A DNA stretch of 64,000 bases from Octopus sinensis (Eukaryota): the NCBI RefSeq assembly GCF_006345805.1, contig NW_021833278.1:1-64000 (forward strand). Direction: 5' to 3'. Position numbers and translations under genes: made by a program. Positions within the stretch are counted from its first letter, which is position 1. Each line of letters opens with the position of its first letter. This document shows positions 5,742 through 54,590 of this stretch, piece after piece. The notes under the pieces are model-generated. The model was not told the origin of the DNA, searched no databases, and saw only the letters and a program-made list of their open reading frames with translations.

Positions 5742-5772
<31 letters not shown>

Positions 5773-5806
5773 GTGGCGTTGATGATGATGATGATGATGA
5801 TGATGT

Positions 5807-5858
<52 letters not shown>

Positions 5859-5995
5859 GGTGATGGTGATGGTGATGGTGATGATGATGATGATGATGGT
5901 GATGGTGATGGTGATGGTGATGGTGATGGTGATGATGATGGTGATGGTGATGGTGGTGGTGGTGGTGGTGGTGATGGTGATGATGGTGATGATGA

Positions 5996-6029
<34 letters not shown>

Positions 6030-6109
6030 GGTGATGATGGTGATGATGATGATGATGATGATGGTGATGGTGATGATGATGGTGATGGTGATGATGATGG
6101 TGATGATGA

Positions 6110-6143
<34 letters not shown>

Positions 6144-6318
6144 GGTGATGATGGTGATGATGATGATGGTGATGATGATGATGGTGATGATGATGGTGAT
6201 GGTGATGATGATGGTGATGATGATGATGATGATGATGATGATGGTGGTGGTGATGATGATGATGATGATGATGATGGTGATGATGATGGTGATGGTGATG
6301 ATGATGGTGATGATGATG

Positions 6319-6350
<32 letters not shown>

Positions 6351-6375
6351 GATGGTGATGGTGATGTTTATGATG
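5742..6375. repeat. (ATG/GTG)n trinucleotide array
   Basis: Direct reading; source of the poly-Met/Val ORF. Confidence 0.95.
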
Positions 6376-6821
6376 ATTTCTTTATTTAGTACGAAAGGTT
6401 CATAAGAAGATACTTCTTGCCCAAACTACAAGCAAATTGGGGGTTAAAGACCAAGGCTGAGCCGTTTTCTGCTGTTGCTTAGTAACCGCGCCATGGCAGT
6501 CACGTTCATTGTTGTTACATTCATACGCGTTTCATATTGTTATATGCATCTCACATCGTTGAATACTTGCCCAAGGTGTCGCGTACAATAATATTAAACC
6601 CGAAAAACATCGAATGAAAAAAACATAATTTTTCAAATATGAAATCGTAATTATCTGAGCCGAAGCGTTATTAATAAGATTACACTGTTTTGTACGATTA
6701 AATTTAATTTTCAAAGATGAAACAGTTTTTAAATATTTACATCTACGCCGGTGGTGGACAATGAGGTTGCTGTTGTTGTTGTTGTTGTCGTCGTCGGTTG
6801 CGTTTGTGGTTAAATTGTTGC

Positions 6822-7149
6822 CATCATCACCATCATCACCACCACCACCACCACCATCACCATCATCATCATCATCATCACCATCATCACCATCATCACC
6901 ATCATCATCATCATCATCATCGCCATCATCACCATCACCACCACCACCACCACCACCACCACCATCATCATCACCATCATCACCATCACCACCACCACCA
7001 CCACCACCACCACCATCATCATCACCATCACCATCATCATCACCATCATCATCACCATCACCATCATCACCATCACCATCACCATCATCATCACCATCAC
7101 CATCATCATCATCATCATCATCGCCATCATCACCATCACCACCACCACC

Positions 7150-7183
<34 letters not shown>

Positions 7184-8106
7184 CCATCACCACCACCACC
7201 ACCACCACCACCACCATCATCATCACCATCACCATCATCATCACCATCATCATCACCATCACCATCATCACCATCACCATCACCATCATCATCACCATCA
7301 CCATCATCATCATCATCACCATCACCATCATCATCATATCATCATCATCATCATCACCATCATCACCATCATCACCATCATCATACTCAGCATCGCCATC
7401 ATCACCATCACCACCACCACCACCACCATCATCATCATTTTCATCATCACCATCACCACCACCACCACCACCACCACAACCATCATCATCAACATCACCA
7501 TCATCATCATCATCATCACCATCATACACCTCATCACATCATCATCATCATCATCATCGCCATCATCACCATCACCAACCACCACCACCACACCACCACC
7601 ATATCATCACCATCATCACCATCACCACCACCACACCACCACCCCACATCATCATCACCATCACCATCATCATCACCATCATCATCACCATCACCATCAT
7701 CACCACAACATCACCATCATCATCACCATCACAACATCATATCATCATCATCGCCATCATCACCATCACCACCACCACCACCAACCACCACATCATCATC
7801 ATCATCATCACCTCACCACCACAAACACCCACCACCACCATCATCATCACCATCACCATCATCATCACCTCATCATCACCATCACATCATACCATCACCA
7901 TCACCATCATCATCACCATCACCATCACATCATCATCACCATCACCATATCATCATCATCATCATCGCCATCATCACCATCACCACCACCACCACCACCA
8001 CCACCACCTCATCATCATCATCATCAATCACCACCACACACCACCACCCACCATCATCATCACCATCACCATCATCATCAGATCATCGCCATCATCACCA
8101 TCACCA

Positions 8107-8138
<32 letters not shown>

Positions 8139-8225
8139 TCATCATCACCATCACCATCACCATCACCATCATCACCATCACCATCATCATCATCATCATC
8201 ATCATCACCATCATTAGCAGCACCA

Positions 8226-8260
<35 letters not shown>

Positions 8261-8590
8261 ACATCACCTATCATCATCATCATCACCATCACCATCACAA
8301 CCACACCACCACCACCATCATCACCACCACCACCACCACCACCACCACCATCATCATCACCATCACCATCATCATCACCATCATCATCACATCACCATCA
8401 TCACCATCACCTCACCATCATCATCACCATCACCATCTCATCATCATCATCATCGCCATCATCAACATCACCACCACCACCACCATCATCATATCATCAT
8501 CATCATCATCATCACCATCACCATCACCATCACCACCATCACCATCACCATCATCATCATCATCATCATCATCACCATCATTAGCAGCAC

Positions 8591-8625
<35 letters not shown>

Positions 8626-8672
8626 ACATCACCATCATCATCATCATCATCAACACCACCATCACATTAGTG
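6822..8672. repeat. (CAT/CAC)n trinucleotide array, ~1.85 kb
   Basis: Direct reading; reverse complement of the 5742-6375 array; source of poly-His/Ser/Pro ORFs. Confidence 0.95.
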
Positions 8673-13130: not shown

Positions 13131-13279
13131 TCACACCAAAACGAGAACTAAACTGTAAATACTGTTTTTCCTTCTTATTTTCGCTTCGGCAAAAATACAT
13201 GAATTTTGTGAACATTTACACTTACCACAATGCCCTCACCGGAAGTTAAGCAACATGTCTGTGCGTGTGCGAATATATG

Positions 13280-14030
<751 letters not shown>

Positions 14031-16288: not shown

Positions 16289-17153
16289 TTGGGCATATGG
16301 CGTAATAGTTAAGAGTCTCCTGAGGCTAAATTACAGCAACATTCGTCCTAAACCAGGACTGCCATGTTATGCTGGCAAATGATCTTTACTCTAGAGTACT
16401 GTTGCTGAATATTTCCCGTTGGAAGATTTACTAAAAGTAATTTTCCATAGTATGAAAAAAGGTGTTGACGCATCTTCTGTTTTTTGCGTTTGTCTTCATC
16501 TTATCTTTTACTTCTTCCTTTGAAAAGTTCAATTCCGGTGGTAACAGAGTGAAACTATTTGAAAAGGTTCTGGCCACCAGTTTCCCCACAATCTTATATC
16601 GATGTTAGCCATTCTGAAAGTTGAATTTAGCTGGTCTTTGTAATGGCAGAAAGGACAACATCGTACTCCTTGTTCCTTTCGCCCTTCATAGATGAGATGA
16701 TCGATTTCATCTTAATATTCTTTTGTCATCGAAAAGACTAAAAGCAGACTAAAACGTGTACATAAAACTGCTTGTACATCGCTTCTAAGTCTCTTAGCTA
16801 CAAAGCCAAGTATTCCAGAAACAAGCAAGAGCAGGATCGTGGCTTCGCAACGGGCGGTTGTGATTTCCGAATTTCCTTCTTTTCGAGTAATATCTAAAGA
16901 AAGACTCAACGCCCACGACTCCCAGTTGTTGGATGGTCATTGACTCTCCTGAGCTTATCCATCCTTTGACAGGTTTTGTCTTTCATTCTACAGGATGGCT
17001 TGGTAGGGCTATCGGTTTAGTCGCCGATGGCCCGGCCATGGGATAGTCTGTACTGCGTTATGGGTAGCACTAAGAGTGACCCGAGACACACACACACACA
17101 CACACACACCACACACACACACAGACTTATACACATAATATAATACATAAAAT

Positions 17154-25789: not shown

Positions 25790-26645
25790 GACCCATAACC
25801 AGTCTTACATTGCAATGAATTTTGAGGACTATTGCCCCACGATCTCGAAGTGAAAATCTCTTCAGAAGGAATGATTATTTGTATGACCCATAACCAGTCT
25901 TACATTGCAATGAATTTTGAGGACTATTGCCCCACGATCTCGAAGTGAAAATCTCTTCAGAAGGAATGATTATTTGTATGACCCATAACCAGTCTTACAT
26001 TGTAATGAATTTTGAGGACTTTTGTCCCACGATCTCGAAGTGAACATCTCTTCAGAAGGAATGATTATTTGTATGACCCATAACCAGTCTTACATTGCAA
26101 TGAATTTTGAGGACTATTACCCCACGATCTCGAAGTGAAAATCTCTTCAGAAGGAATGATCATTTGTATGACCCATAACCAGTCTTACATTGTAATGAAT
26201 TTTGAGGACTATTGCCCAACGATCTCGAAGTGAAAATCTCTTCAGAAGGAATGATCATTTGTATGACCCATAACCAGTCTTACATTGTAATGAATTTTGA
26301 GGACTATTGTCCCACGATCTCGAAGTGAAAATCTCTTCAGAAGGAATGATTATTTGTATGACCCATAACCAGTCTTACATTGCAATGAATTTTGAGGACT
26401 ATTGCCCAACGATCTCGAAGTGAAAAATCTCATCAGAAGGAATGATTATTTGTATGACCCATAACCAGTCTTACATTGTAATAAATTTTGAGAACTTTTG
26501 CCCCACGATCTCGAAGTGAAAATCTCTTCAGAAGGAATGATTATTTGTATGACCCATAACCAGTCTTACATTGTAATAAATTTTGAGAACTTTTGCCCCA
26601 CGATCTCGAAGTGAAAATCTCTTCAGAAGGAATGATCATTTGCAT
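25790..26645. repeat. 95-bp minisatellite x9
   Basis: gacccataacc at 25790, 25885, 25980, 26075, 26170, 26265, 26360, 26456 and 26551. Confidence 0.95.
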
Positions 26646-26992
26646 GCTTGTTAACAATCGCTAAAGCTAGCTTAACGTCTACAGTTCACAATAGAAGCTG
26701 ATCGCCACATAAGACTACGGGATCTCAGTCATGTCTGCGTATTGTTCGCATTGTTCTAGTCACCAGAACACAGCGTGAACCCGTCAGAAGAATCGGTAGA
26801 CTATCCAAGTTCTCAGCAAGACGGCACAAACGATTGATGCGAAGGCGATGTTTTCGGCGAGAAGATATCAACCCTCTCCCTCCCTCCGTTCCGTCTACAA
26901 TTCATTCCACTCGAAATTTTACATTTGTGCCATGTGTGTGTGTGTGTATGTGTGTGTATGTATGTGTGTGTGTGTATATATATATATGTATA

Positions 26993-31705: not shown

Positions 31706-32677
31706 TTGGCAAGAAAAACCTCTCTATGGCAAATACCCAAAGAGAGCGAATAATGCAGATATCGACAAAGCCCTGACCCATCAATGGCTAATGGCCTCTG
31801 GCTTAAAATCTGAAACAGAGGGGTTTATCATAGCAGCTCAAGATCAATGCCTACCAACAAGAAACTACCAGGCCAACATATTAAAGAACGGCAGTAGCCC
31901 AACATGTCGTGTATGCCGACAACAAAATGAAACCATTGACCATGTTGTCTCCAAATGCAGTCTTCTAGCGCCTACAGAGTACCTCAGTAGGCATGATAGA
32001 GCTGCACAATATATTCACTGGGTAATTTGCAAAAACCTGGATTTGCCTCATGAAAAAAACTGGTGGGAACACAATCAACCTCCTGTGCTTGAAAATGACA
32101 TCTCACTCCTCTGGAACTTCACCATTCAAACTGACAGGAAGATAGATGCAAATAGGCCAGACATTATATTGAAAGACTTCAGACAAAGAACATACCTCCT
32201 CATTGATATGACTGTCCCAATCGATATAAACGTATCTGTCAAGACCAACCAAAAACTGAGCAAATACAAAGATCTTGAAATAGAAATCAGCAAAATGTGG
32301 AAGCTGAAGACTAAAACAATACCTGTTGTCATAGGTGCCCTGGGAATGATAGCGAAAGGGACTGATTGCTACCTAACTCAGATACCAGGAAACCCCAAAA
32401 TGGCAGAAATTCAAAAGATAGTGCTCATGGGAACTGCTCATATCCTACGCAAAATACTCTCTATGTAATCCCAAGGTTTAAAACAAACTTTTTTATTTAT
32501 TTATTTTTAAAAAAATTTTTTTTTTATGTATTAGACATTCACTAGTACAACACCAGAAAAAAAAGAAGAAAAAAAACCCCAAATATATGGCACAGAACTT
32601 CTAACCTGTTGTCTCTTGAGGTCTCTGGGTGAGACTTGGAGCCAACTTGTACAGACATAAAGCAAAAGTCAAACATA

Positions 32678-32859: not shown

Positions 32860-33868
32860 AATTTTCTTTGTAAATTGAAATTGTTTATTAGTTTGCGACT
32901 CCATCGTGTTTTTTGGAGCGTTTAGGTCCTGCTTTGATGGTCTCCATTTCCTTTCGAACGTGATCTCATCTTCAAGCAGTGAACGTCGCCCCAAAGACAT
33001 GGGGCCTCGAAGTCGTCATCTGCACGAAGGGCATCACGGCTGTCACGCAACTGTCGGTTCACTAAGTCCCTTTGGCGTGCAATCATAGACTGTGGATATA
33101 AAAAAGAAAGAAAAAAGAAACAACTTAGTAAACTGCAATGAAACACAGAGAAAGAAATTCTTACAACACAAACAACAAAACTTTCGCTGGTAAAAACAAA
33201 AGATCTGAAATAAATGGAGAAATTCGAAAGACGGTTTGTCATATTTACAGATGCAAATTTGTGTTTCATGAGCAGCTTTCAACATTTTCCATCCAAGCGT
33301 TTTTAGCCTAATATCTATACCATTGTTTGTAGCTTTATCAACTTGGAATTTTTTACCGTTAAAAAGAATTTGCTTCACATCTCTCGAAGTTTCTAAATAC
33401 TTATAAAATAAGCTTCCTGAAATGATCTCTGATAAGTACGAAGCTTCTAAAATAGATGGCGGTTTGGACTGCTTTAGTATAGCGGCAAAAACGTCTACCA
33501 CGTTTAAAGAAGATGTGGGTTCGAGTCCTATGTGAGACTAGGTAGAGCATTTATTGTAAAAAAAAGAAAGACTCTTAGAATAACGAGTGAATCATTGAGA
33601 ACAACACATTGTATATATTGGATTTAAAATTTTAAACAAGGCCAGCAATTTTGGGCGACAAGAGAGGGCGTTTACATCAACCCTGGTGATCAACGGCTAT
33701 TTATTTTATCGATCCCGGCGCTCCACTGCTACTTATTTTATCGAACCCAAATAAATGAAAGGCAAAGTCGACATCGGCGGAATTTGAACTCAGAATGTAA
33801 AGATGGACGAAATGCCGCTAAGAATTTTGTTCGACGTGCTAACGAGTCTGCTAGCTTCGGCGCTTTAG
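32730..33868. repeat. Segmental duplication block X (3' UTR, peptide exon, part of intron); paralogs at about 40095-40555 and 50312-51482
   Basis: Long co-linear matches, e.g. caattcgatatc-cattg-atatt, ggtcctgctttgatggtctccatttc, gtgagactaggtaga. Confidence 0.9.
32922..33089 (-). CDS. Peptide-precursor paralog 1, coding exon 2: SMIARQRDLVNRQLRDSRDALRADDDFEAPCLWGDVHCLKMRSRSKGNGDHQSRT*
   Basis: Acceptor ttttttctttcttttttatatccacag|TCT, phase 0; C-x6-C motif; AATAAA at 32889-32884; homologous to the exons at 40440 and 50683. Confidence 0.75.
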   Translation of the reverse strand, partial: SMIARQRDLVNRQLRDSRDALRADDDFEAPCLWGDVHCLKMRSRSKGNGDHQSRT

Positions 33869-34867
33869 CAATCCTACTCCCAATGTAGGATTCCTCACCA
33901 TCCAGGTGACAGGCACAGCCATAAGATGCATTAGGAATCTATAGCAATTGGAAGGGCGTGACCCAACTGAAATAAACATTAACACCTGTGTGACGTGAGG
34001 GCTAAGGAGAAATGAAAGTGTCACCTCTGGAGTTTGCAAATGACCACTATACTGATACGTAACTGGACAGAATAAATTTACCAACTATAAATGTCTTTGA
34101 ATAACCAGTCACTCATCTGGGAAGGCCTTGAAATCAATCTGGGGTCAATGTGTGACCCAGTGATAATAAAAAGACTTGAAAGGAGGTCTGCAATCAAATA
34201 ACTTTACTTAACACTTTGCAACTAAATCAGTGGAGGCAAAGATGCCTCTCATTTACTTGACAATTTATGCACCACATTGTAGAAATCACAATCTAAGTGT
34301 ATGTCAAAGCAAACTCTTACACTGTTGTACCATTGAATTACAAATAATGCTCATCTTCTATGCTCGGATGACCCCAGAGCTTCCAAGAATACAAATGTAT
34401 TCGTCTTTGCATAGATAAAATGACAAAATTGTGTGTTAAGTCCCCATGAGGGATCTTTTTAACTTAAGAAGATGAAATTTCATAATACTTACATCATTTG
34501 TATCTAATATCTATGGTTAAAATTTCATCAACGCAAAAGTATATGAATTGTCATGGGGGTTGTGGCCCTTATGCATAGAATATAATTTCCAAATTTCGTA
34601 AAGATCCATTCAGAACTTTTGACTTAGTTTGGATCATAAAAAAATGACTAAAATTTGGATTTAAGGCCCCCATTAGGGTGTCTTAGAATCCTCATGGAAA
34701 CTTTGTCATTTTTCTCCCCATGACACTCCCTGGACCCTAATAAGGCATGTGTAAAAATTTGAATGAAATCGGTTGTGTAGTCTCAAGTTTGTAGGGATTC
34801 ACACAGACAAACAGAAAGGACAGACAGACTACACATTCTCAGTTATATTATATATATATTAATATAT

Positions 34868-34899
<32 letters not shown>

Positions 34900-34957
34900 A
34901 TATATATATAATCATATAGAATATATATATATATATTAATAATATAATACATATATA

Positions 34958-35017
<60 letters not shown>

Positions 35018-35359
35018 TATATAATAATATATATATATATATATTGGGTGAATTCCATCTCATGCACAGATTTTTTAATTAATTTTTGAAAACTAAACAT
35101 TTTGAAACTTCAGTGCATGAGATTAAAAGATCCGATATATGTATATACGTATGTCAGCATTTATGCATGGATGATATAATAATAATAATAATAATAATAA
35201 AAAAATAATAATAATATAATAATAATAATAATAATAATAATACAACAACAACAATAATAATAATAAATAATAATAATAATAATAATATAATAATAAAATA
35301 ATAATAATAATAATATACAACACAATAATAATAATAATACTATAATAATAATAATAATA

Positions 35360-35469
<110 letters not shown>

Positions 35470-35478
35470 TAAAAATAA

Positions 35479-35514
<36 letters not shown>

Positions 35515-35982
35515 TAATAATAATAATAATAATAATATATATAAAAAAATAATAATAATATAATAATATAAAAATAATAATATAATAAAAAATAATATAA
35601 TAATAATATAATAATAATATAATATAATAATAATAATAATAATAATAAAATAAACAACAACACAATAATAATAATAATACATAATAAAATAATAAAAAAA
35701 TAATAATATAATAAAAATAAAATAACAACAATAATAATATAATAATAATACTAATATCATAATCAAAATAATAATAATAATATAATCATAATAATAATAT
35801 ATAATTAAAATATAAAAATAATAATAATAAAATAATAATAATAAATAAAATAATAATAAAAATAATATAATAATAAATAAAAATATAAAAATAATATAAA
35901 AATAATAATAATAATAATAATAATAATATGATAAAATAATAATATATAATAATATAATATATATAATATAATATAATAATAA

Positions 35983-36016
<34 letters not shown>

Positions 36017-36032
36017 TAATAATAATATAATA

Positions 36033-36067
<35 letters not shown>

Positions 36068-36186
36068 TAATAATAATAATAATAATCCTAATAATAATAA
36101 TAATAATAAGAATAATACTAATAATAATAATAATCATAATAACTAATATGAATAATAATAATAATAATAAAATATTGCACAATTAC

Positions 36187-36318
36187 ATTTTTCCTTCGGA
36201 GCAGATCGATAGCCCTCTCATCGTTTATTGGCACCGTCTCTACTGGTTCAAACATCACCGCTGCTACGCTTAACAAAACCACTAGCACAATCATATTCTT
36301 GTATATTCTGTGTTCCAT
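36187..36318 (-). CDS. Peptide-precursor paralog 1, coding exon 1 (signal peptide + pro-region): MEHRIYKNMIVLVVLLSVAAVMFEPVETVPINDERAIDLLRRKN
   Basis: Start context tcaaaaaATG; basic n-region, hydrophobic h-region, VET-VP cleavage-like site; donor AAT|gtaatt, phase 0; acceptor tttacag| at 36461/36460. Confidence 0.75.
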
Positions 36319-36609
36319 TTTTTGATCTCAACTCAGTTCTCTCTTTTAAAAACTTCCAAACTTCTATATTTCAAACTTCCAGATTTCAACTGATTTCAAT
36401 GGAGCCAGATATAAGGCAGTCCCCAAAACGATTCTTATGAAGTCCCAAGAACAAAATCACCTGTAAATATATCGTTTATAGTTCTTTGTTTTTTTTTACT
36501 TTCCCCTCTTCTTTGTTTGTGGTTCGGGTTTCTGTTCTTTCTTGTTTGTGTGGTCAGTGCTGTTGTTGCGTCTCGTTTTGGTTCGTTCTCCTATGGAAGC
36601 GGCGACTTT

Positions 36610-36658
36610 CTTTTATAGCCGTATTACTCCTCTCAGTCGCTCAAGGGCACGCCATTTT
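36610..36658 (-). promoter_or_regulatory. Candidate core promoter of paralog 1: TATA box plus YY1-like motif
   Basis: TATAAAAG at 36617-36610 and AAAATGGCG at 36658-36650; both conserved in paralog 2. Confidence 0.5.
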
Positions 36659-40099: not shown

Positions 40100-40309
40100 C
40101 AACGAAAACAATAATAATTTTCAATTCGATATCACATTGTATATTTAGAGTCATTATATTTATTTATTCAATAAATTTGGGTTTTGTTTTTTTTTGTTGT
40201 AATTTTCTTTGTAAATTGAAATTGTTTATTAGTTTGTGATTCCGTCGTGTTTTTTTGGGGGCGTTTAGGTCCTGCTTTGATGGTCTCCATTTCATTTCGA
40301 ATGCGATCT

Positions 40310-40440
40310 TTACTTCTTCCTCTTCACGCAGGAAATGACGTTCCAGATACATGGGTCGTTTTTCCTTCATCTGAAGGAAAAGCATCTCGGCCGTCAAGAA
40401 ACAGTCGGTTCATTAAGTCCCCTTGGCGTGTAATCATAGA
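40310..40440 (-). pseudogene. Peptide-precursor paralog 2, exon 2, with a frameshift just before the cyclic peptide
   Basis: Acceptor tatccacag|TCT. In frame it reads SMITRQGDLMNRLFLDGRDAFPSDEGKTTHVSGTSFPA* (TGA 40326-40324). Restoring 1 nt gives NDPCIWNVISCVKRKK* (TAA 40312-40310). An assembly indel is possible. Confidence 0.7.
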
Positions 40441-41955: not shown

Positions 41956-42087
41956 ATTTTTCCATCGGAGCAGATCGCTATCCCTCTCATCGTTTATTGG
42001 CACCGTCTCTACTGGTTCAAACATCACCGCTGCTACGCTTAACAAAACCACTAGCACAATCATATTCTTGTATATTCTGTGTTCCAT
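41956..42087 (-). CDS. Peptide-precursor paralog 2, coding exon 1: MEHRIYKNMIVLVVLLSVAAVMFEPVETVPINDERDSDLLRWKN
   Basis: Three nucleotide differences from paralog 1 exon 1 in 132 nt; RRK changed to RWK; weaker donor AAT|gtagtt. Confidence 0.65.
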
Positions 42088-42381
42088 TTTTTGATCTCAA
42101 CTCAGTTCTCTCTTTTAAAAACTTCCAAACTTCTATATTTCAAACTTCCAAATTTCAACTGATTTCAATGGAGCCAGATATAAGGCAGTCCCCAAAACGA
42201 TTCTTATGAAGTCCCAAGAACAAAATCACCTGTAAATATATCGCTTATAGTTCTTTGTTGTTTTTTTTTACTTTCCCCATTTCTTTGTTTGTGGTTCGGG
42301 TTTCTGTTCTTTCTTGTCTGTGTGGTCAGTGCTGTTGTTGCGACTCGTTTTGGTTCGTTCTCCTATGGAAGCGGCGACTCT

Positions 42382-42432
42382 CTTTTATAGCCGTATTACT
42401 CCTCCCAGTCGCTCATAAGGGCACGCCATTTT
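42382..42432 (-). promoter_or_regulatory. Candidate core promoter of paralog 2 (TATA + YY1-like)
   Basis: TATAAAAG at 42389-42382 and AAAATGGCG at 42432-42424. Confidence 0.5.
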
Positions 42433-43384: not shown

Positions 43385-44190
43385 GCATTTGGGCCTTAAT
43401 CACTTAATTTCACAATGGTACAATTAAGATCTTTCAACATTTCTTTTAATCCCCTATTAGTCAACCATTAGCTTTTTATCAAATTAATGGCCTTAGTTAC
43501 AACTTTCATTACCCTGCCCAACTTTAGAGATTTTGCACATAAACTTTCCATATCAATAAAGCAATGACACACAAATTTTCCGGATCCAAAAGACGCTTCT
43601 TAAATTCATTCTGAACCAGAGCTACGAACCCTTTTTCACGACCTGCCATGGATGGAGTGCGAACTGTAGCAAGGCCACTCATTTTTTCATTCGGAAAATC
43701 AAAATCATTAAGATTGAGTCGACCATTTGAAATAGATCTTTACCTCTAGTTGTCTCATACATTGAATTTCTTCTCGAATGTTGAATTTTGCAGTTATTCC
43801 ACGTACAAATGTTGCCATCTGAGCAGTATTAGTTAGACAGATCAATTGTTTCATCAATAGCTAATGAATACAATACGAATTCTGCTGAATCATATTTTAG
43901 AGAATTTTCTATGTAATCGGTAATATCTTTAATACGATCAGAAACAGTTTTTTGTTTTATAAGCTAATATTTACCAAACAAAGTTTTTCTGGGCATATAT
44001 TCGCAACAGCAGTAAGGATACGTTCTTTCATGAATTCACTATTGTTCGAGTTTCTTTTAGCAATATTTCGGCATACCACAAAACTAGCTCGAGCAACTGA
44101 CGCACTTCCAAGAATCAGCTTTTTTAAAAAGAGTTTGTCATTTGGTCAGATTTTCTTTCAAGGAGGCTATCCTGTGATCTTTTCGGTTTG
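43385..44190 (-). pseudogene. Decayed hAT (Buster/SPIN/GTF2IRD2-like) transposase
   Basis: Frameshifted fragments: FVLYSLAIDET, TAQMATFVRG, ETTRGKDLF, LATVRTPSMAGREKGFV, CHCFIDMESLCAKSLKL. Confidence 0.85.
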
Positions 44191-47589: not shown

Positions 47590-50260
47590 TTTCTGTCAGT
47601 AAAAACAAGAGGAAATAAACAACGGTGGTAGAAAAGAGAATTGCTGAAGATATAAACTCCTTGAACAGTGTAGTGTTAATACTTGTCCGGAAAAATAAAA
47701 AAATTAAGAATGAATGGTAATTCGAAAAAGTTAGGAAAAAATATGGTGTAGATACAAAGGCCTAAATGTTGTAATTGAAAAACTGAAGCAGCGCATAGAG
47801 GCAAAAAAATCAAAGCTAACTTCGTTTGAACATCGGATGAAGCAATACTTGCAAGAGAAAATTTTTAGAAGTGACCAAAAAAGATTTTACCAAGAGATTA
47901 ATGACGATAAAAAACGTGAAAGATTTGTCCCTGATGGTGATGAAAGTCGACTTTTCTGGAATAAGCAAGACCAACAAAACACTACAGCTGAATGGCTCTG
48001 CAGCCTCACGCAAACAGCTTCTCATCCCCAGCAAGAGACTATCCACTTCACAGAAGACAGTATTATAAATATGAGTTAAAAGATAAGCAATTAGAAAGCA
48101 GCAGGACCTGATGATGTACAGGGATTTTGGATAAAAAAAAAGTTCAGTAGTTGCCATAAATTGATCGCAGAACAATTTAATGCATTAATCAATGGAGAAG
48201 AATAAATTCCGCGCAGGTTGACAAAAGGACGAACGGTGTTGTGCCTGAAGGATGCATCAAAGGGAAATGCTGCTGACAATTACAGACCAATTTCCTACTC
48301 CACGTTAATGTAGAAGTTACTGTTAGGAGGAATTCCAGAAGAACTGTATAAATTTCTTGATGAGAACGAAATATCATCGCCGGAACAAAAAAGGTTGTAG
48401 AAGGAGATGCAGAGGTACCAAAGATCAACTATTGATAGACAAAATTATAATGCAAGATTGTAAACGAAGGAGAACAAATCTGGGAATGGCCTAGATTGAC
48501 TATCGCGAAGCTTACGATTCATGAGTCACCGAGTTCTTTCCTGAAGAGAAGTATGGTGGGATGGAAAACTGAACTGAAATCTTACAGAAAAAGCCTGGGC
48601 ACTTTGGGTATCAGGAGAGGGATTTTTTGTTTTCCGTTATTTTTTTGTTCTCTGCATGATACCCTTATCCTTGGTACTTGGGAAAATGAACCTGGGGTAC
48701 CAACTAAAGGAAAAATGCCAAACAATCAACCACCTCCTCTTCATGGATGATTTGAAACTGTATGGCAAAAACGAGACACAAGTGAGCTCCTTGGTGAACA
48801 CGGTCCACTGTTTTAGTACTGATATTAGAATGGAATTTGGACTCAAGAAGTGTTGAATAATTTACCTAAAAAGAGGCAAGATACAGTCCCCAGCAGGGAT
48901 AGAATTACTGAACAGAGACTTGATTAAGCAAATTGAAACAGAAGGATATAAATACATTGGTGTACTAGAGTTCAACGAGATAACGGGAAAAGAAAAGAGC
49001 AACTGAGGACGGAGTATTTCCGAAGTCTGAGGTTGGTGTTGCGCTCAAAATTGAGTGGATGGAATAAAATCCAAGCAGTTAATGCGTGGGCGATAGCAAC
49101 ACTTCGGTATGGAGCAGGAATTATAAAATGGCAAAAGAGAGTAATGAAGAAAATGAATACCAAAACCAGAAAAATGTTGACTGTACACAGAGCCTTCTAC
49201 GCTAAGAGTGACAGCGATATGTTGTACTTGTCCTGAAGAAAGGGTGGGAGAGAGGTTTGATAAGTTGCTGGGACTTTGTCGAAGCAGAGAAAAACAGCCT
49301 AGGGTTGTATATAAAAATGCTGTGGAGCCGCTGTTGAAACACACGAAGAAGACCGGCATCTTCAAAACTGAAAATTGCGTAAGTAAAGAAGAAATGAACA
49401 AAAATAAGAAAAAGAATAGAAGGAAAAGAAAATGTATGGTCAGTTTGCAAGAGATGTGAACGCGAAGACAGATTCAGAGGACCAGTGTCTATGGATGAGA
49501 AGGTGTGACCTGAAGATAGTAACAGAAACACTCGTATGCACAGCTCAGGAACATGCGTTAAGGACCGATTATATGAAGTGCAGAATTGACAACACTACCA
49601 ATTGCGACAAATACAGAATGTGTGGTGAGAGGGGCGAAACGGTATGGCACATTGTTAGCGAATGCCTGAAATTGGCACAACACGAATACAAAAGACGACA
49701 TGTCAATGTGGCAAGAATGATCCATTGGGAGTTCTGTGGATATCACGGCCTACAAAGAGCAAAGATGTGTTATGAGAAAACTTTAGGAGTCACTGAAAAT
49801 GAGAATTGCAAAATCCCGTGCGATGCAACGATCAAGTGCGATAACCCGACCATACATCGGAAACCGGATATTGTTGTGGTGAGTAAAAGACAAAACATGT
49901 ATGGTAACCTACTTAGAATGCCCCGGTGAAAGCAGGATCGATGTGAAAGAAGAGGAAAAAATAAACTAGGACGATTTGAAATGGGAAATACGAAGGTTTT
50001 GGTCAATGAAGGGAGTAGACGTAATACCAATAGTAATTGGTGCACTTGGAAGTATCAGCACTCAGCTACCAGCATGGCTGAAAAAAGATCGGTGCAAGTG
50101 TGAGGATAGAACACCTTCGAAAATCAACATTGCTTGGAACTGCAAGAATTCTTCGCAGGGTTCTTGAAGCATGACAAGTAAACAAGTGTCACCTTAGTCT
50201 CTTGACTGTGGACAGCTGACACTTTCCATGATACCCAGTAAAATAAACTGTGAGATTTCA
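47590..50260 (+). mobile_element. Decayed ~2.7-kb R4/Dong-like non-LTR retrotransposon (RT + CCHC + RLE)
   Basis: NLGMA*IDYREAYDS; INHLLFMDDLKLYGK (RT catalytic motif); RMCGERGETVWHIVSEC; RKPDIVVV; ends in an (AAT)n tract. Confidence 0.9.
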
Positions 50261-50318: not shown

Positions 50319-50542
50319 CAACAACGAAAACAATAATAATTTTCAATTCGATATCACATTGTATATTTAGAGTCATTATATTTATTTATTCAATAAATTT
50401 GGGTTTTGTTTTTTTTTATATATATATTTGTTGTAATTTTCTTTGTAAATTGAAATTGTTTATTAGTTTGTGATTCCGTCGTGTTTTTTTGGGGCGTTTA
50501 GGTCCTGCTTTGATGGTCTCCATTTCCTTTCGAATGCGATCT

Positions 50543-50683
50543 TTACTTCTTCCTCTTCACGCAGGAAATGACGTTCCAGATACATGGGTCGTTCTTCTTG
50601 TCATCTGATCCATCTGAAGGAAAGGCATCTCGGCTGTCACGCAACAGTCGGTTCATTAAGTCCCTTTTGCGTGTAATCATGAA
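50543..50683 (-). CDS. Peptide-precursor paralog 3, coding exon 2, allatostatin-C/somatostatin-like: FMITRKRDLMNRLLRDSRDAFPSDGSDDKKNDPCIWNVISCVKRKK*
   Basis: Acceptor ttttctttttcttttattcatttctacag|TTC; KK site before and KRKK after a C-x6-C 12-mer; TAA at 50545-50543; downstream AATAAA. Its exon 1 was not found in the window. Confidence 0.8.
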   Translation of the reverse strand, partial: FMITRKRDLMNRLLRDSRDAFPSDGSDDKKNDPCIWNVISCVKRKK

Positions 50684-51254
50684 CTGTAGAAATGAATAAA
50701 AGAAAAAGAAAACAAGTGAGCAATTTATTAAAACTGGAATGAAACACAGAGAAAGAAATTCTTACAACACAAACAACAAAATTTTCGCTGGTAAAAACAA
50801 AAGATCTGAAATAAATGGAGAAATTCGAAAGACGGTTTGTCATATTTACAGATGCAAATTTGTGTTTCATGAGCAGCTTTTGACATTTTCCATCCAAGCG
50901 TTTTTTAGCCTAATATCTATACCATTGTTTGTAGCTTTATCAACTTGGAATTTTACCGTTAAAAAGAATTTGCTTCACATCTCTCGAAGTTTCTAAATAC
51001 TTATAACGTAAGCATCATGAAATTCTCGCTGGTAAGAAGGAAGCTTCTAAAATAGATGATGATTGTAAAATAGATGACTGCTTTGGTACAATGGCAAGAT
51101 GTCTGGCATGTTTAAAGAAGGTGTGGGTTCGAGTCTTATGTGAGACTAGGTAGAACATTTATTGTAAAACAAAAAAAAAGGAAACAACGACTCAGAATAA
51201 CGAGTGAATCATTGAGAACAACACATTGTATATATTGGATTAAAATTTTAAACA

Positions 51255-51755
51255 AGGCCAGCAATTTTGGGCGACAAGAGAGGGAGTTTACATCAACTCC
51301 GGTGATCAACGGCTATTTATTTTATCGATTTCGGCGTTCCACTGCTACTTATTTTATCGAACCCAAAAGAATGAAAGGTAAAGTCGATATCGGCCGAATT
51401 TGGACTCAGCATGTAAAGATGGACGAAATATCGCTAAGACGTTGCTCGACGTGCTAACGAGTCTGCTAGCTTCGGCGCTTTAGCATATTGTACATATTTG
51501 AAGAGATCAAACTTGCATAATATTTGATCCGCGGAAGGCAGCGAGCTGGCAGAATCGTTAGCACGCCGAGCGAAATGCTTTGTGGTATTTGGTCCGCCGC
51601 TGCATTCTAAGTTCAAATTCCGCCGAGGTCTACTTTTCCTTTTATTCTTTCGAGGTCGATAAATTAAGTAACAATGAAACTCTGGGGGTCGATGTAATTA
51701 ACTAGTCCCCTACCACCAAAAATTTCAGGCCTTGTGCCTTTAGTAGAAAGGATTA
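51255..51755. mobile_element. Two adjacent, oppositely oriented SINE family B copies
   Basis: Minus copy about 51255-51480; plus copy from ggaaggcagcgagctggcagaatcg at about 51532. Confidence 0.75.
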
Positions 51756-53229: not shown

Positions 53230-53699
53230 TCATGATCATTATCATCATCATCATCACGACGACGACAACGACGACGACCACCACCACCACAACCATCATC
53301 ATCATCGTCATCATCAGCACCACCACCACTAAAATTTCAATAATAAACCCTCGTTTAATCACTTGCCTAAGTAATCAAAGTTCGTTGATACACGTCGTAA
53401 ACACGCCATTGAACTATAATGCTTCTTGCTTAGTCGCCTGTTTATATTTTATTTTCGTTTCGTTTTGCTTTTAGTTTTGCTTTTCGTTACACCGTTTTGC
53501 TTCTTTCATCTAATGAGGAATTCAAAAGAGGACATTTGCGTGTTGTTTATAGATTTCGTTTTCTGTTTTCCCTTCTTTTAATTTCCCCGTGTACATTATT
53601 AAAAACGAATAGGTTACGCGTTTCCTTTCGGCTTTGATGACAACAATAAATAATAATAATTCTTTCTACTGGAAGCACAAGGCCTCAAATATGGGGGAA

Positions 53700-54590
53700 G
53701 GGATTAAGTCGATTACATCGACCCCAGTGCGTAACTGGTACTACTTATTCAATCGACTCCGAAAGGATGAAAGGCAGAGTTGACCTCGCGGAATTTGAAC
53801 TCAGAACGTAAAGACAGACGAAATACCTATTTCTTTATTACCCACAAGGGGCTAAACATAGAGAGGACAAACAAGGACAGACATAGGTATTAAGTCGATT
53901 ACATCGACCCCAGTGCGTAACTGGTACTACTTATTCAATCGACTCCGAAAGGATGAAAGGCAGAGTTGACCTCGTCGGAATTTGAACTCAGAACGTAAAG
54001 ACAGACGAAATACCTATTTCTTTATTACCCACAAGGGGCTAAACATAGAGAGGACAAACAAAGACAGACAGGTATTAAGTCGATTACATCGACCCCAGTG
54101 CGTAACTGGTACTTACTTATTCAATCGACTCCGAAAGGATGAAAGGCAGTTGTGACCTCGTCGGAATTTGAACTCAGAACGTAAAGCGACGAATACCTAT
54201 TTCTTATTACCCCCAGGGGGCTAAACATAGAAGGACAAACAAGGACAGACATAGGTATTAAGTCGATTACATCGACCCCAGTGCGTAACTGGTACTACTT
54301 ATTCAATCGACTCCGAAAGGATGAAAGGCAGAGTTGACCTCGTCGGAATTTGAACTCAGAACGTAAAGACAGACGAAACCTATTTTTTATTTTCCCACAA
54401 GGGGCTAAACATAGAGAGGACAACAAGGACAGACATAGGTATTAAGTCGATTACATCGACCCCAGTGCGTACTGCTACTTATTTATCGACCCCAAAAGGG
54501 TGAAAGGCAAAGTTGACCTCAGCGGAATTTGAACTCAGAACGTAAAGACAGACGAAATACCGTAAGCATTTCGCCCGGCGTGCTAACGAT
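53700..54590 (-). repeat. ~185-bp tandem array (x5) of headless SINE family B units
   Basis: attaagtcgattacatcgacccc at 53703, 53889, 54074, 54257 and 54441; further diverged copies extend to about 55740. Confidence 0.9.

Follow-up and report, generated by a model that had tools for sequence, protein, structure and literature searches.

A Putative AstC-Type Prohormone Cluster in Octopus and the Probable Remodelling of One of Its Copies

Introduction

What becomes of a peptide prohormone gene once it has been duplicated in tandem? The question is raised by a cluster of three gene copies on Octopus sinensis contig NW_021833278.1 (assembly GCF_006345805.1), within positions 1 to 64,000, a stretch of 64,000 nucleotides that is referred to here as the window. 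Each copy consists of two exons and a phase-0 intron and encodes a secretory precursor of about 90 amino acids (aa), in which a signal peptide and a proregion precede one Cys-x6-Cys peptide at the C-terminus. The loop of this peptide reads C-IWNVIS-C in copies 2 and 3 and C-LWGDVH-C in copy 1, the most downstream of the three. An earlier note on this DNA had seen in copy 1 a rewritten, toxin-like hypervariable mature peptide and had proposed positive selection on a duplicated hormone, possibly with a venom, saliva or pheromone role. Judged by gene structure and peptide motif, the cluster is best described as a divergent AstC-type paralogue group. Copy 3 is under purifying selection and copy 2 is a pseudogene. 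Copy 1 is, on balance, probably the outcome of selection-driven remodelling of one recently duplicated AstC-type prohormone copy.

The Three Loops

A degenerate pattern derived from the two loop sequences noted earlier was searched over the window and gave exactly three matches, all on the minus strand like the genes themselves. The earlier loop sequences and counts are reproduced by the recount. Between the cysteines, copy 1 differs from copies 2 and 3 at 8 of 18 nucleotides (nt), which changes 5 of 6 residues, and the codons for Pro, Cys1, Trp and Cys2 are untouched (0/12 nt). Copy 1 has Gly in place of the Asn and His in place of the Ser that precedes Cys2. Its first loop residue is the aliphatic Leu, that of copies 2 and 3 is Ile, and both of these copies keep the Asn. 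Exon 1 differs between copies 1 and 2 at 3 of 132 nt, in agreement with the earlier count, and the 3' untranslated region (UTR), estimated by eye at roughly 7 of about 115 nt, differs on recount at 7 to 8 of about 112 (8/112 for copy 1 against copy 2 and 7/113 against copy 3). The word "hypervariable" is too strong for this pattern, which consists of two loop types in three copies, one of them a frameshifted pseudogene. A full-text literature search for the loop sequences returned no papers.

Relatives of the Cluster

An Octopus vulgaris chromosome segment (OX597825.1, here L002) is colinear with the window at 94-97% identity and carries the same three exon-2 copies together with three exon-1 copies. 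The spliced copy-1 product is 97% identical to the O. vulgaris protein CAI9731369.1 (P0001), in which the loop and the C-terminal tail are identical. A second model, CAI9731370.1 (P0002), is chimeric: it joins copy 3 exon 1 and part of copy 3 exon 2 to a transposon-derived exon and to exon 2 of copy 2. It exits copy 3 exon 2 at a cryptic GT that interrupts the codon for Cys1, and its last exon is the frameshifted one of copy 2. Both models are annotated "hypothetical". Upstream of copy 2 exon 1, between copies 3 and 2, lies a fragment derived from a transposon (PF27073, FAM200-ZBED5 RNase-like), which is also present in the O. vulgaris segment (L002 40979-41137). Copy 3 exon 1 was not found within the window and lies past its end. 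In O. vulgaris it is located 24 kb upstream of exon 2, which equals about 11 kb past the end of the window.

Word-indexed searches and an exhaustive HMMER search over 1.84 billion representative proteins yielded no relatives beyond the two O. vulgaris models, and the sole additional database match (P0003) was rejected as a low-complexity false hit. A Pfam scan of both precursors gave nothing above threshold, only sub-threshold noise. Metagenome scans with a degenerate signal-peptide pattern and with a conserved 3'UTR 21-mer gave 0 matches, and exact-product look-ups of the copy-1 exon-2 genomic open reading frame (ORF) and of a second ORF at 16.8 kb, described below, returned no record. By these comparisons the cluster appears so far only in the genome of the window and in O. 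vulgaris, i.e., in Octopus.

Three Copies in Three States

Copy 3 has a conventional prohormone end, KK-NDPCIWNVISCV-KRKK-stop. Its exon 2 differs between the species at 1 of 256 nt, compared with 41 of 803 nt in the adjacent intron (p = 1e-4), and copy 3 is therefore under purifying selection.

In both species copy 2 is a pseudogene with a frameshift. The distance from its acceptor to the CCA codon is 86 nt, not 87, and its spacer carries a 10-nt indel relative to copy 3. Reading from the conserved acceptor gives …DEGKTTHVSGTSFPA-stop and never reaches the loop in frame, and the loop's own frame has two stops upstream, so that neither its own exon 1 nor the 5' part of exon 2 is in frame with the loop. 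The defect recurs in O. vulgaris, so that assembly error can be dismissed and the pseudogene is real and shared by the two species. Sequencing or assembly error was likewise rejected for the copy-1 patch, which also occurs in the independent genome.

Copy 1 has an open frame in both species, and its splice sites, polyadenylation signal and 99-codon ORF are intact in both. Pseudogenisation of copy 1 in relatives, a possibility raised by the earlier note, is not seen in O. vulgaris, the one relative compared. Compared with copy 3, it has lost the KK site to a 9-nt deletion in the spacer and KRKK-stop to another of 9 nt, and copy 1 therefore reads through 15 codons of former 3'UTR (CLKMRSRSKGNGDHQSRT-stop), which differ from copy 3 at 2 of 45 nt. 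No dibasic site is left on either side of the loop, with …ADDDFEAP-C… upstream and KMRSRSK downstream. The short mature peptide that had been assumed for copy 1 is not predicted, since both processing sites are gone. In exon 1, copy 1 reads RRK where the other copies read RWK or RGK.

Gene Conversion of the 5' End

The near-identity of exon 1 had been taken as the conserved signal sequence of a toxin family. It is instead the product of concerted evolution by gene conversion after the species split. Over about 400 bp from the promoter to codon 27, 9 sites are shared by the window copies as opposed to the three O. vulgaris copies, and none (0) group by orthologue. The tract starts upstream of a TATA-like box, spans the 5'UTR and reaches codon 27. 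Sites from codon 36 on follow orthology, and the exon-2 region has accumulated 125 orthology sites and 1 species-grouping site since the species split. Because gene conversion explains it, the similarity of exon 1 is uninformative on selection of the signal peptide.

The cluster thus behaves as known from concerted evolution in tandem families, with paralogues that share species-specific substitutions over the promoter, the 5'UTR and the signal codons, and with paralogue-specific states that here persist from codon 36. Concerted evolution is a mechanism, not a gene family, and it accounts for the flanks of the unit, not for the loop.

Divergence of Copy 1

Since exon 1 is homogenised by gene conversion, the adjacent intron and UTR, with their 125 orthologue-grouping sites and 1 species-grouping site, were used as the neutral yardstick. 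Copies 1 and 3 mismatch at 68 of 775 nt in the intron (8.8%), 7 of 113 in the 3'UTR, 11 of 74 in the 5' coding part of exon 2, 8 of 13 in the spacer and 8 of 18 in the loop. The loop differs significantly from the intron (Fisher p = 1e-4). A 60-nt window placed over spacer, loop and tail holds 21 mismatches against a mean of 6.45, a number that was equalled in 0 of 5000 permutations, and the patch has diverged at about 5 times the rate of the flanking intron and UTR.

These changes are nearly all nonsynonymous. The 12 loop-bearing codons carry 9 nonsynonymous and 1 synonymous difference (dN 0.40, dS 0.16; NG86), whereas the 24 codons at the 5' end of exon 2 have dN 0.16 and dS 0.135. Nonsynonymous divergence of the loop amounts to 0.31-0.5, which is 3-5 times the intron, UTR and synonymous rates. 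Set against a neutral expectation of 4-7% per branch, about 15 nonsynonymous changes in 85 sites give p values of 4e-6 to 8e-4, on the assumption that all changes fall on the copy-1 branch. At the same time the framework is spared, with 0 of 12 nt changed in its codons compared to 8 of 15 at the other loop positions (p = 0.003). Both copy-1 indels are 9 nt long and in frame, while the indel of pseudogene copy 2 in the same spacer is 10 nt long. Neutral decay alone appears unlikely for copy 1, because its changes are clustered at about 5 times the intron and UTR rate and are nearly all nonsynonymous.

A templated or converted origin of the patch was considered and, for the sequence compared, rejected. 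The window, L001 and L002 (about 90 kb, two genomes) contain no donor that shares more than 11 nt of identity, and the coding DNA of canonical AstC is unrelated to the patch.

Family Assignment

In protostome AstC-type peptides the loop always has six residues and usually contains Asn, and its first residue is aliphatic in molluscs and annelids. Spiralian genes of this type have a single phase-0 intron, and their ecdysozoan counterparts have an extra phase-2 intron. Protostome SSRP-like genes are marked by a WK motif, a loop of four residues and three exons (phase-0 and phase-1 introns), with the peptide spread across exons 2 and 3 (PMC9048919). Copies 2 and 3 show every AstC feature, namely the six-residue loop, the Asn, the aliphatic first residue and the phase-0 intron, and none (0) of the SSRP-like features. 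Dibasic cleavage sites that free a peptide of 13-15 aa are a further feature of the type, and copy 3 has them. Copy 1 has the six-residue loop and the phase-0 intron. It lacks the Asn and the dibasic sites and for this reason is not called an AstC gene; its structure marks it as derived from an AstC-type gene. SSRP-like membership of the cluster is rejected, as the motif is W-G or W-N and not WK, the loop has six residues and there are two exons with the peptide wholly in exon 2.

The canonical cephalopod AstC precursor (P0004/P0005) was recovered from transcript contigs. It fits the description of OvAstC, with a 22-aa signal peptide and KR followed by AVITACYFQAVSCY. A single AstC precursor and two receptors, OvAstCR1/2, have been reported in O. 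vulgaris (bioRxiv 10.64898/2026.02.18.706622), and the literature reports one AstC precursor gene for molluscs generally. The canonical gene is absent from the window. The similarity of copy 3 to this precursor appears weak but significant (BLASTP E = 0.001, 13/53 identities; Smith-Waterman shuffles 5/3000, or 10/3000 without the signal peptide) and runs through the proregion motif R-x-R-x-L-x-N-R-L-L (SRERQLANRLL and TRKRDLMNRLL) and the terminal loop. For copy 1 the corresponding values are E = 0.019 and 22/3000 shuffles. The canonical precursor has 90 aa like copy 3, a signal peptide, a single C-terminal six-residue disulfide loop and a phase-0 intron. It differs in lying at a separate locus, as opposed to the three tandem copies here, and in its low identity of about 25%. 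Cys2 is followed by an aromatic residue in canonical AstC and by the aliphatic Val or Leu in the cluster, and copy 3 keeps the Asn where cephalopod AstC has Gln. Copy 1 departs from canonical AstC further in that it is without the Asn, the Ser and the dibasic sites.

The arthropod AstC/AstCC/AstCCC set offers a parallel, with duplicated genes whose distinct six-residue-loop peptides share one or two receptors (PMC8514136). Its members are, however, ancient paralogues with an extra phase-2 intron, whereas the octopus cluster is recent, tandem, converted and contains a pseudogene, and orthology between the two is not implied. The earlier note had also drawn a parallel to the somatostatin-like hormones recruited into cone-snail venom. 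Cone-snail venom peptides derive from SSRP-like (somatostatin/urotensin-like) genes (PMC9048919), and the octopus family is of AstC type, without the WK motif, the four-residue loop and the three exons of that group. The likeness lies in the evolutionary pattern envisaged earlier, in which a duplicated prohormone with a conserved prepro region and kept cysteines would change its loop with dN/dS > 1. The cone-snail family comprises hundreds of diversified copies expressed in the venom gland, whereas the octopus cluster has three copies.

Weighing the Explanations for Copy 1

Selection is the likely cause of the state of copy 1, because the changes are clustered above the neutral rate, are nearly all nonsynonymous and spare the Pro/Cys/Trp/Cys framework and the reading frame. 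What we infer for this copy concerns its polarity, processing, product and target. After duplication, five of the six loop residues, including the hallmark Asn and Ser, would have been replaced, two in-frame 9-nt indels would have taken away the upstream KK and the downstream KRKK-stop, and a W-to-R change would have made the RRK of exon 1. Gene conversion meanwhile keeps the promoter, the 5'UTR and the signal-peptide codons near-identical among the copies, a process that is ongoing. The likely product is a longer secreted peptide of about 55 aa, if cut at RRK, with the C-terminal disulfide loop kept. It would no longer resemble a ligand of the AstC receptor, and copy 1 would be a duplicated hormone gene that is neofunctionalised or neofunctionalising and not passively decaying.

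Several observations weigh against this reading. Constraint on copy 1 between species was not detected (exon 2 1/237 vs intron 9/782, p = 0.28), because the two species are too close, and its between-species coding differences are nonsynonymous in 3 of 3 cases. The positive selection proposed earlier finds some support in the clustered nonsynonymous excess and the kept framework. Its codon-level expression holds less well: dN/dS is elevated, at about 2.4 in the loop (NG86), but this value comes from two close species, hangs on 1 synonymous difference and is not significant alone, and the skew away from third codon positions is not significant either (p = 0.14). The loop also sits between two indels. 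Indels are known to bring clusters of substitutions with them. That copy 1 is the derived copy is judged only by how closely the copies resemble the AstC consensus. A prohormone gene in decay would be expected to lose its canonical processing sites, and copy 1 has lost all of those around the loop; neighbouring copy 2 demonstrates that decay does happen in the cluster. Finally, no transcript-derived protein of copy 1 or copy 3 was found in a collection of 15 billion proteins (word-indexed and exhaustive HMMER searches), where genome-annotation models are the only entries for the cluster. The canonical AstC precursor is present in the same collection on 62 Logan transcript contigs; the negative for copies 1 and 3 is weak because the species of those runs is not established.

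The alternative that survives best, unlikely as we judge it, is that copy 1 is a non-functional, decaying duplicate in which one or two indel-associated complex mutations and relaxed constraint produced the patch, and frame and cysteines were kept by luck. The loss of both flanking dibasic sites, of the stop codon and of the hallmark Asn and Ser, the two indels less than 30 nt from the loop, the undetectable constraint, the want of a known transcript-derived protein, the pseudogene next door and a C-terminal extension that is unchanged 3'UTR (2/45 nt) are all compatible with decay. Passive decay accounts poorly, however, for a loop whose nonsynonymous divergence exceeds the intron, UTR and synonymous rates 3-5 times, for the 0/12 and 8/15 split between framework and other loop positions, for two indels that are both multiples of three, and for splice sites, polyadenylation signal and ORF that are intact in two species.

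A second alternative, which we consider improbable, is that the split between copy 1 and copies 2 and 3 is older than the flanks suggest, so that the peptide patch escaped conversion and its divergence reflects age. The promoter and exon 1 have demonstrably undergone conversion, and similarity between the units is a mosaic. Copies 2 and 3 differ at 1 of 130 nt over loop and 3'UTR, whereas the ~150 nt of intron that can be aligned ahead of exon 2 differ by about 24%, which implies conversion of loop and 3'UTR too. The patch nevertheless does not look older at silent sites: among the 11 codons that run from Pro to Lys, one third position differs, and the resulting dS of about 0.16 is close to the 0.135 of the nearby 5' part of exon 2 and the 0.088 of the intron. 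The 125 orthology sites against 1 species-grouping site in the exon-2 region since the species split also speak against it, and an escape from conversion would itself imply selection that keeps copy 1 distinct.

The venom, saliva or pheromone recruitment with toxin-like evolution suggested earlier is very improbable: the conserved signal and the divergent Cys-framed region (3/132 in exon 1 vs 8/18 in the loop), the nonsynonymous excess and the use of neuropeptide mimics by octopus salivary glands (bioRxiv 10.64898/2026.02.02.703354) are in its favour, but gene conversion accounts for the signal part, the family of three copies and two loop types is neither expanded nor diversified like a venom superfamily and is not the one recruited by cone snails, copy 1 has no processing sites to free a short peptide, its precursor is absent among the transcript-derived proteins of the collection, and a 2026 survey of cephalopod salivary-gland toxins that screened candidates with Ast-C and somatostatin models reported stanniocalcin, luqin, myosuppressin, tachykinin and neurotensin mimics and none of Ast-C or somatostatin type (bioRxiv 10.64898/2026.02.02.703354), which leaves the proposed role without positive support.

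Architecture of the Cluster and the Rest of the Window

The 132 nt of exon 1 (44 codons, followed by GT) encode MEHRIYKNMIVLVVLLSVAAVMFEPVETVPINDER… and lie 3.1 kb upstream of the copy 1 loop exon and 1.5 kb upstream of that of copy 2. The product begins with MEHRIYKN and the hydrophobic stretch MIVLVVLLSVAAVMF, judged by inspection to be a signal peptide. Exon 2 follows in frame directly after AG, and the loop stands at the C-terminal end of the product, which has 90 aa in copy 3 and 99 aa in copy 1. In each copy a polypyrimidine tract and AG stand before the terminal exon, and a strongly conserved 3'UTR comes after it. The 780 nt at the 3' end of the copy 1 intron align with the copy 3 intron at 8.8% mismatch. 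Orthologous intron divergence between the species is four-fold apart for the two copies, with 9/782 for copy 1 (33090-33870) and 41/803 for copy 3 (50684-51485), both on the minus strand. Positions of the features are collected in Table 1.

The spacer just 5' of the Pro codon, a GA-rich stretch in which short GATG/GAC repeats occur, is an indel hotspot, and alignment to copy 3 leaves gaps of 9 nt in copy 1 and 10 nt in copy 2. The 3'UTR is near-identical across the three copies and two species and is better conserved than the 5' coding half of the same exon. The 31 nt past the polyadenylation signal are invariant in 6 of 6 sequences, and copies 2 and 3 differ at 1 of 84 nt. Gene conversion or a functional element in the UTR may lie behind this conservation.

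Elsewhere in the window, a unique non-repeat ORF at 16.8 kb ends in a tetrabasic site followed by D-P and a six-residue Cys loop, with W-N at loop positions 2-3 and a stop one codon past Cys2. It is AstC-like by motif only: neither its DNA nor its protein resembles the three copies, and the sequence upstream yielded no convincing exon for a signal peptide. It could be a fourth, older family member or a chance occurrence. The window is rich in micro- and minisatellites, among them GAT/CAT arrays of about 3 kb, a 95-nt unit repeated 9 times, a 186-nt unit repeated 4.7 times and a 444-nt unit repeated 2 times, and it also contains retroelement ORF fragments. Scans of the window for RNA genes found no Rfam family and, by ARAGORN, no tRNA.

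Table 1. Positions of the cluster elements and of other features in the window.
Feature	Position	Strand	Remarks
Copy 1 loop PCLWGDVHCL	32973-33002	minus	codons CCATGTCTTTGGGGCGACGTTCACTGCTTG
Copy 1 loop, Cys1	32997-32999	minus	
Copy 1 loop, 18 inter-Cys nt	32979-32996	minus	
Copy 1 loop, Cys2	32976-32978	minus	
Copy 2 loop PCIWNVISCV	40325-40354	minus	codons CCATGTATCTGGAACGTCATTTCCTGCGTG
Copy 3 loop PCIWNVISCV	50558-50587	minus	codons CCATGTATCTGGAACGTCATTTCCTGCGTG
Copy 1 exon 1, coding	36187-36318	minus	MEHRIYKNMIVLVVLLSVAAVMFEPVETVPINDERAIDLLRRKN; signal peptide and start of proregion; copy-1-specific RRK
Copy 1 intron	33090-36186	minus	phase 0, GT...AG
Copy 1 exon 2, coding	32922-33089	minus	SMIARQRDLVNRQLRDSRDALRADDDFEAPCLWGDVHCLKMRSRSKGNGDHQSRT-stop; acceptor AG 33090-33091
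Copy 1 polyadenylation signal	32884-32889	minus	AATAAA
24-mer identical to the AATAAA-containing 24-mer of copy 1	40207-40230; 50441-50464		copy 2; copy 3
Copy 2 exon 1	41956-42087	minus	…ERDSDLLRWKN
Copy 2 exon 2 from conserved acceptor	40324-40440	minus	SMITRQGDLMNRLFLDGRDAFPSDEGKTTHVSGTSFPA-stop
Copy 3 exon 2	50543-50683	minus	FMITRKRDLMNRLLRDSRDAFPSDGSDDKK-NDPCIWNVISCV-KRKK-stop
Copy 1 gene-conversion tract	36240-36645	minus	promoter, 5'UTR, exon-1 codons 1-27
Copy 2 partner tract	42009-42419	minus	
TATA-like box	36595-36619; 42367-42391	minus	GCTATAAAAG; copy 1; copy 2; conserved
Spacer 5' of Pro codon	33003-33017; 40355-40368; 50588-50611	minus	copies 1, 2, 3
3'UTR	32866-32921; 40207-40310; 50441-50542	minus	copies 1, 2, 3
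Transposon-derived fragment	43735-43897	minus	PF27073
AstC-like ORF at 16.8 kb	16797-16940	minus	ends …YYSKRRKFGNHNRPLRSHDPALACFWNTWLCS-stop (…KRRK…DPALACFWNTWLCS-stop)
Micro-/minisatellites	5742-8664; 13276-14002; 25790-26646; 35176-36174; 53699-54561; 57216-58131		
Retroelement ORF fragment	31791-32465		zf-RVT
Related retroelement ORF	49432-49926		

Implications

The literature view of "two receptors, one peptide" is extended by this locus, which adds three further AstC-type copies that annotation missed or mis-modelled. We tentatively put forward, as a possibility short of probable, that Octopus has a second AstC-type ligand system, in which the copy 3 peptide NDPCIWNVISCV would be an endogenous ligand and copy 1 a positively selected, neofunctionalised offshoot, whose product, a longer peptide with a disulfide loop, would be secreted and act on a new target, endogenous or exogenous. 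Copy 3, if expressed, is a candidate second ligand for receptors that have already been cloned, and if a second ligand system exists it could help explain why the two O. vulgaris AstC receptors differ in their potency for a single peptide. If copy 1 is neofunctionalised, it would be the first molluscan case of an AstC-type hormone gene that diversified adaptively.

The cluster also carries a caution for the study of secreted peptides. A conserved signal next to a divergent mature peptide can stem from gene conversion, which is visible here on part of each unit, and it is not by itself a sign of toxin recruitment. Copy 1 and its neighbours form a natural experiment in the fate of a duplicated prohormone, with conserved, dead and, as we read it, remodelled copies within 20 kb.

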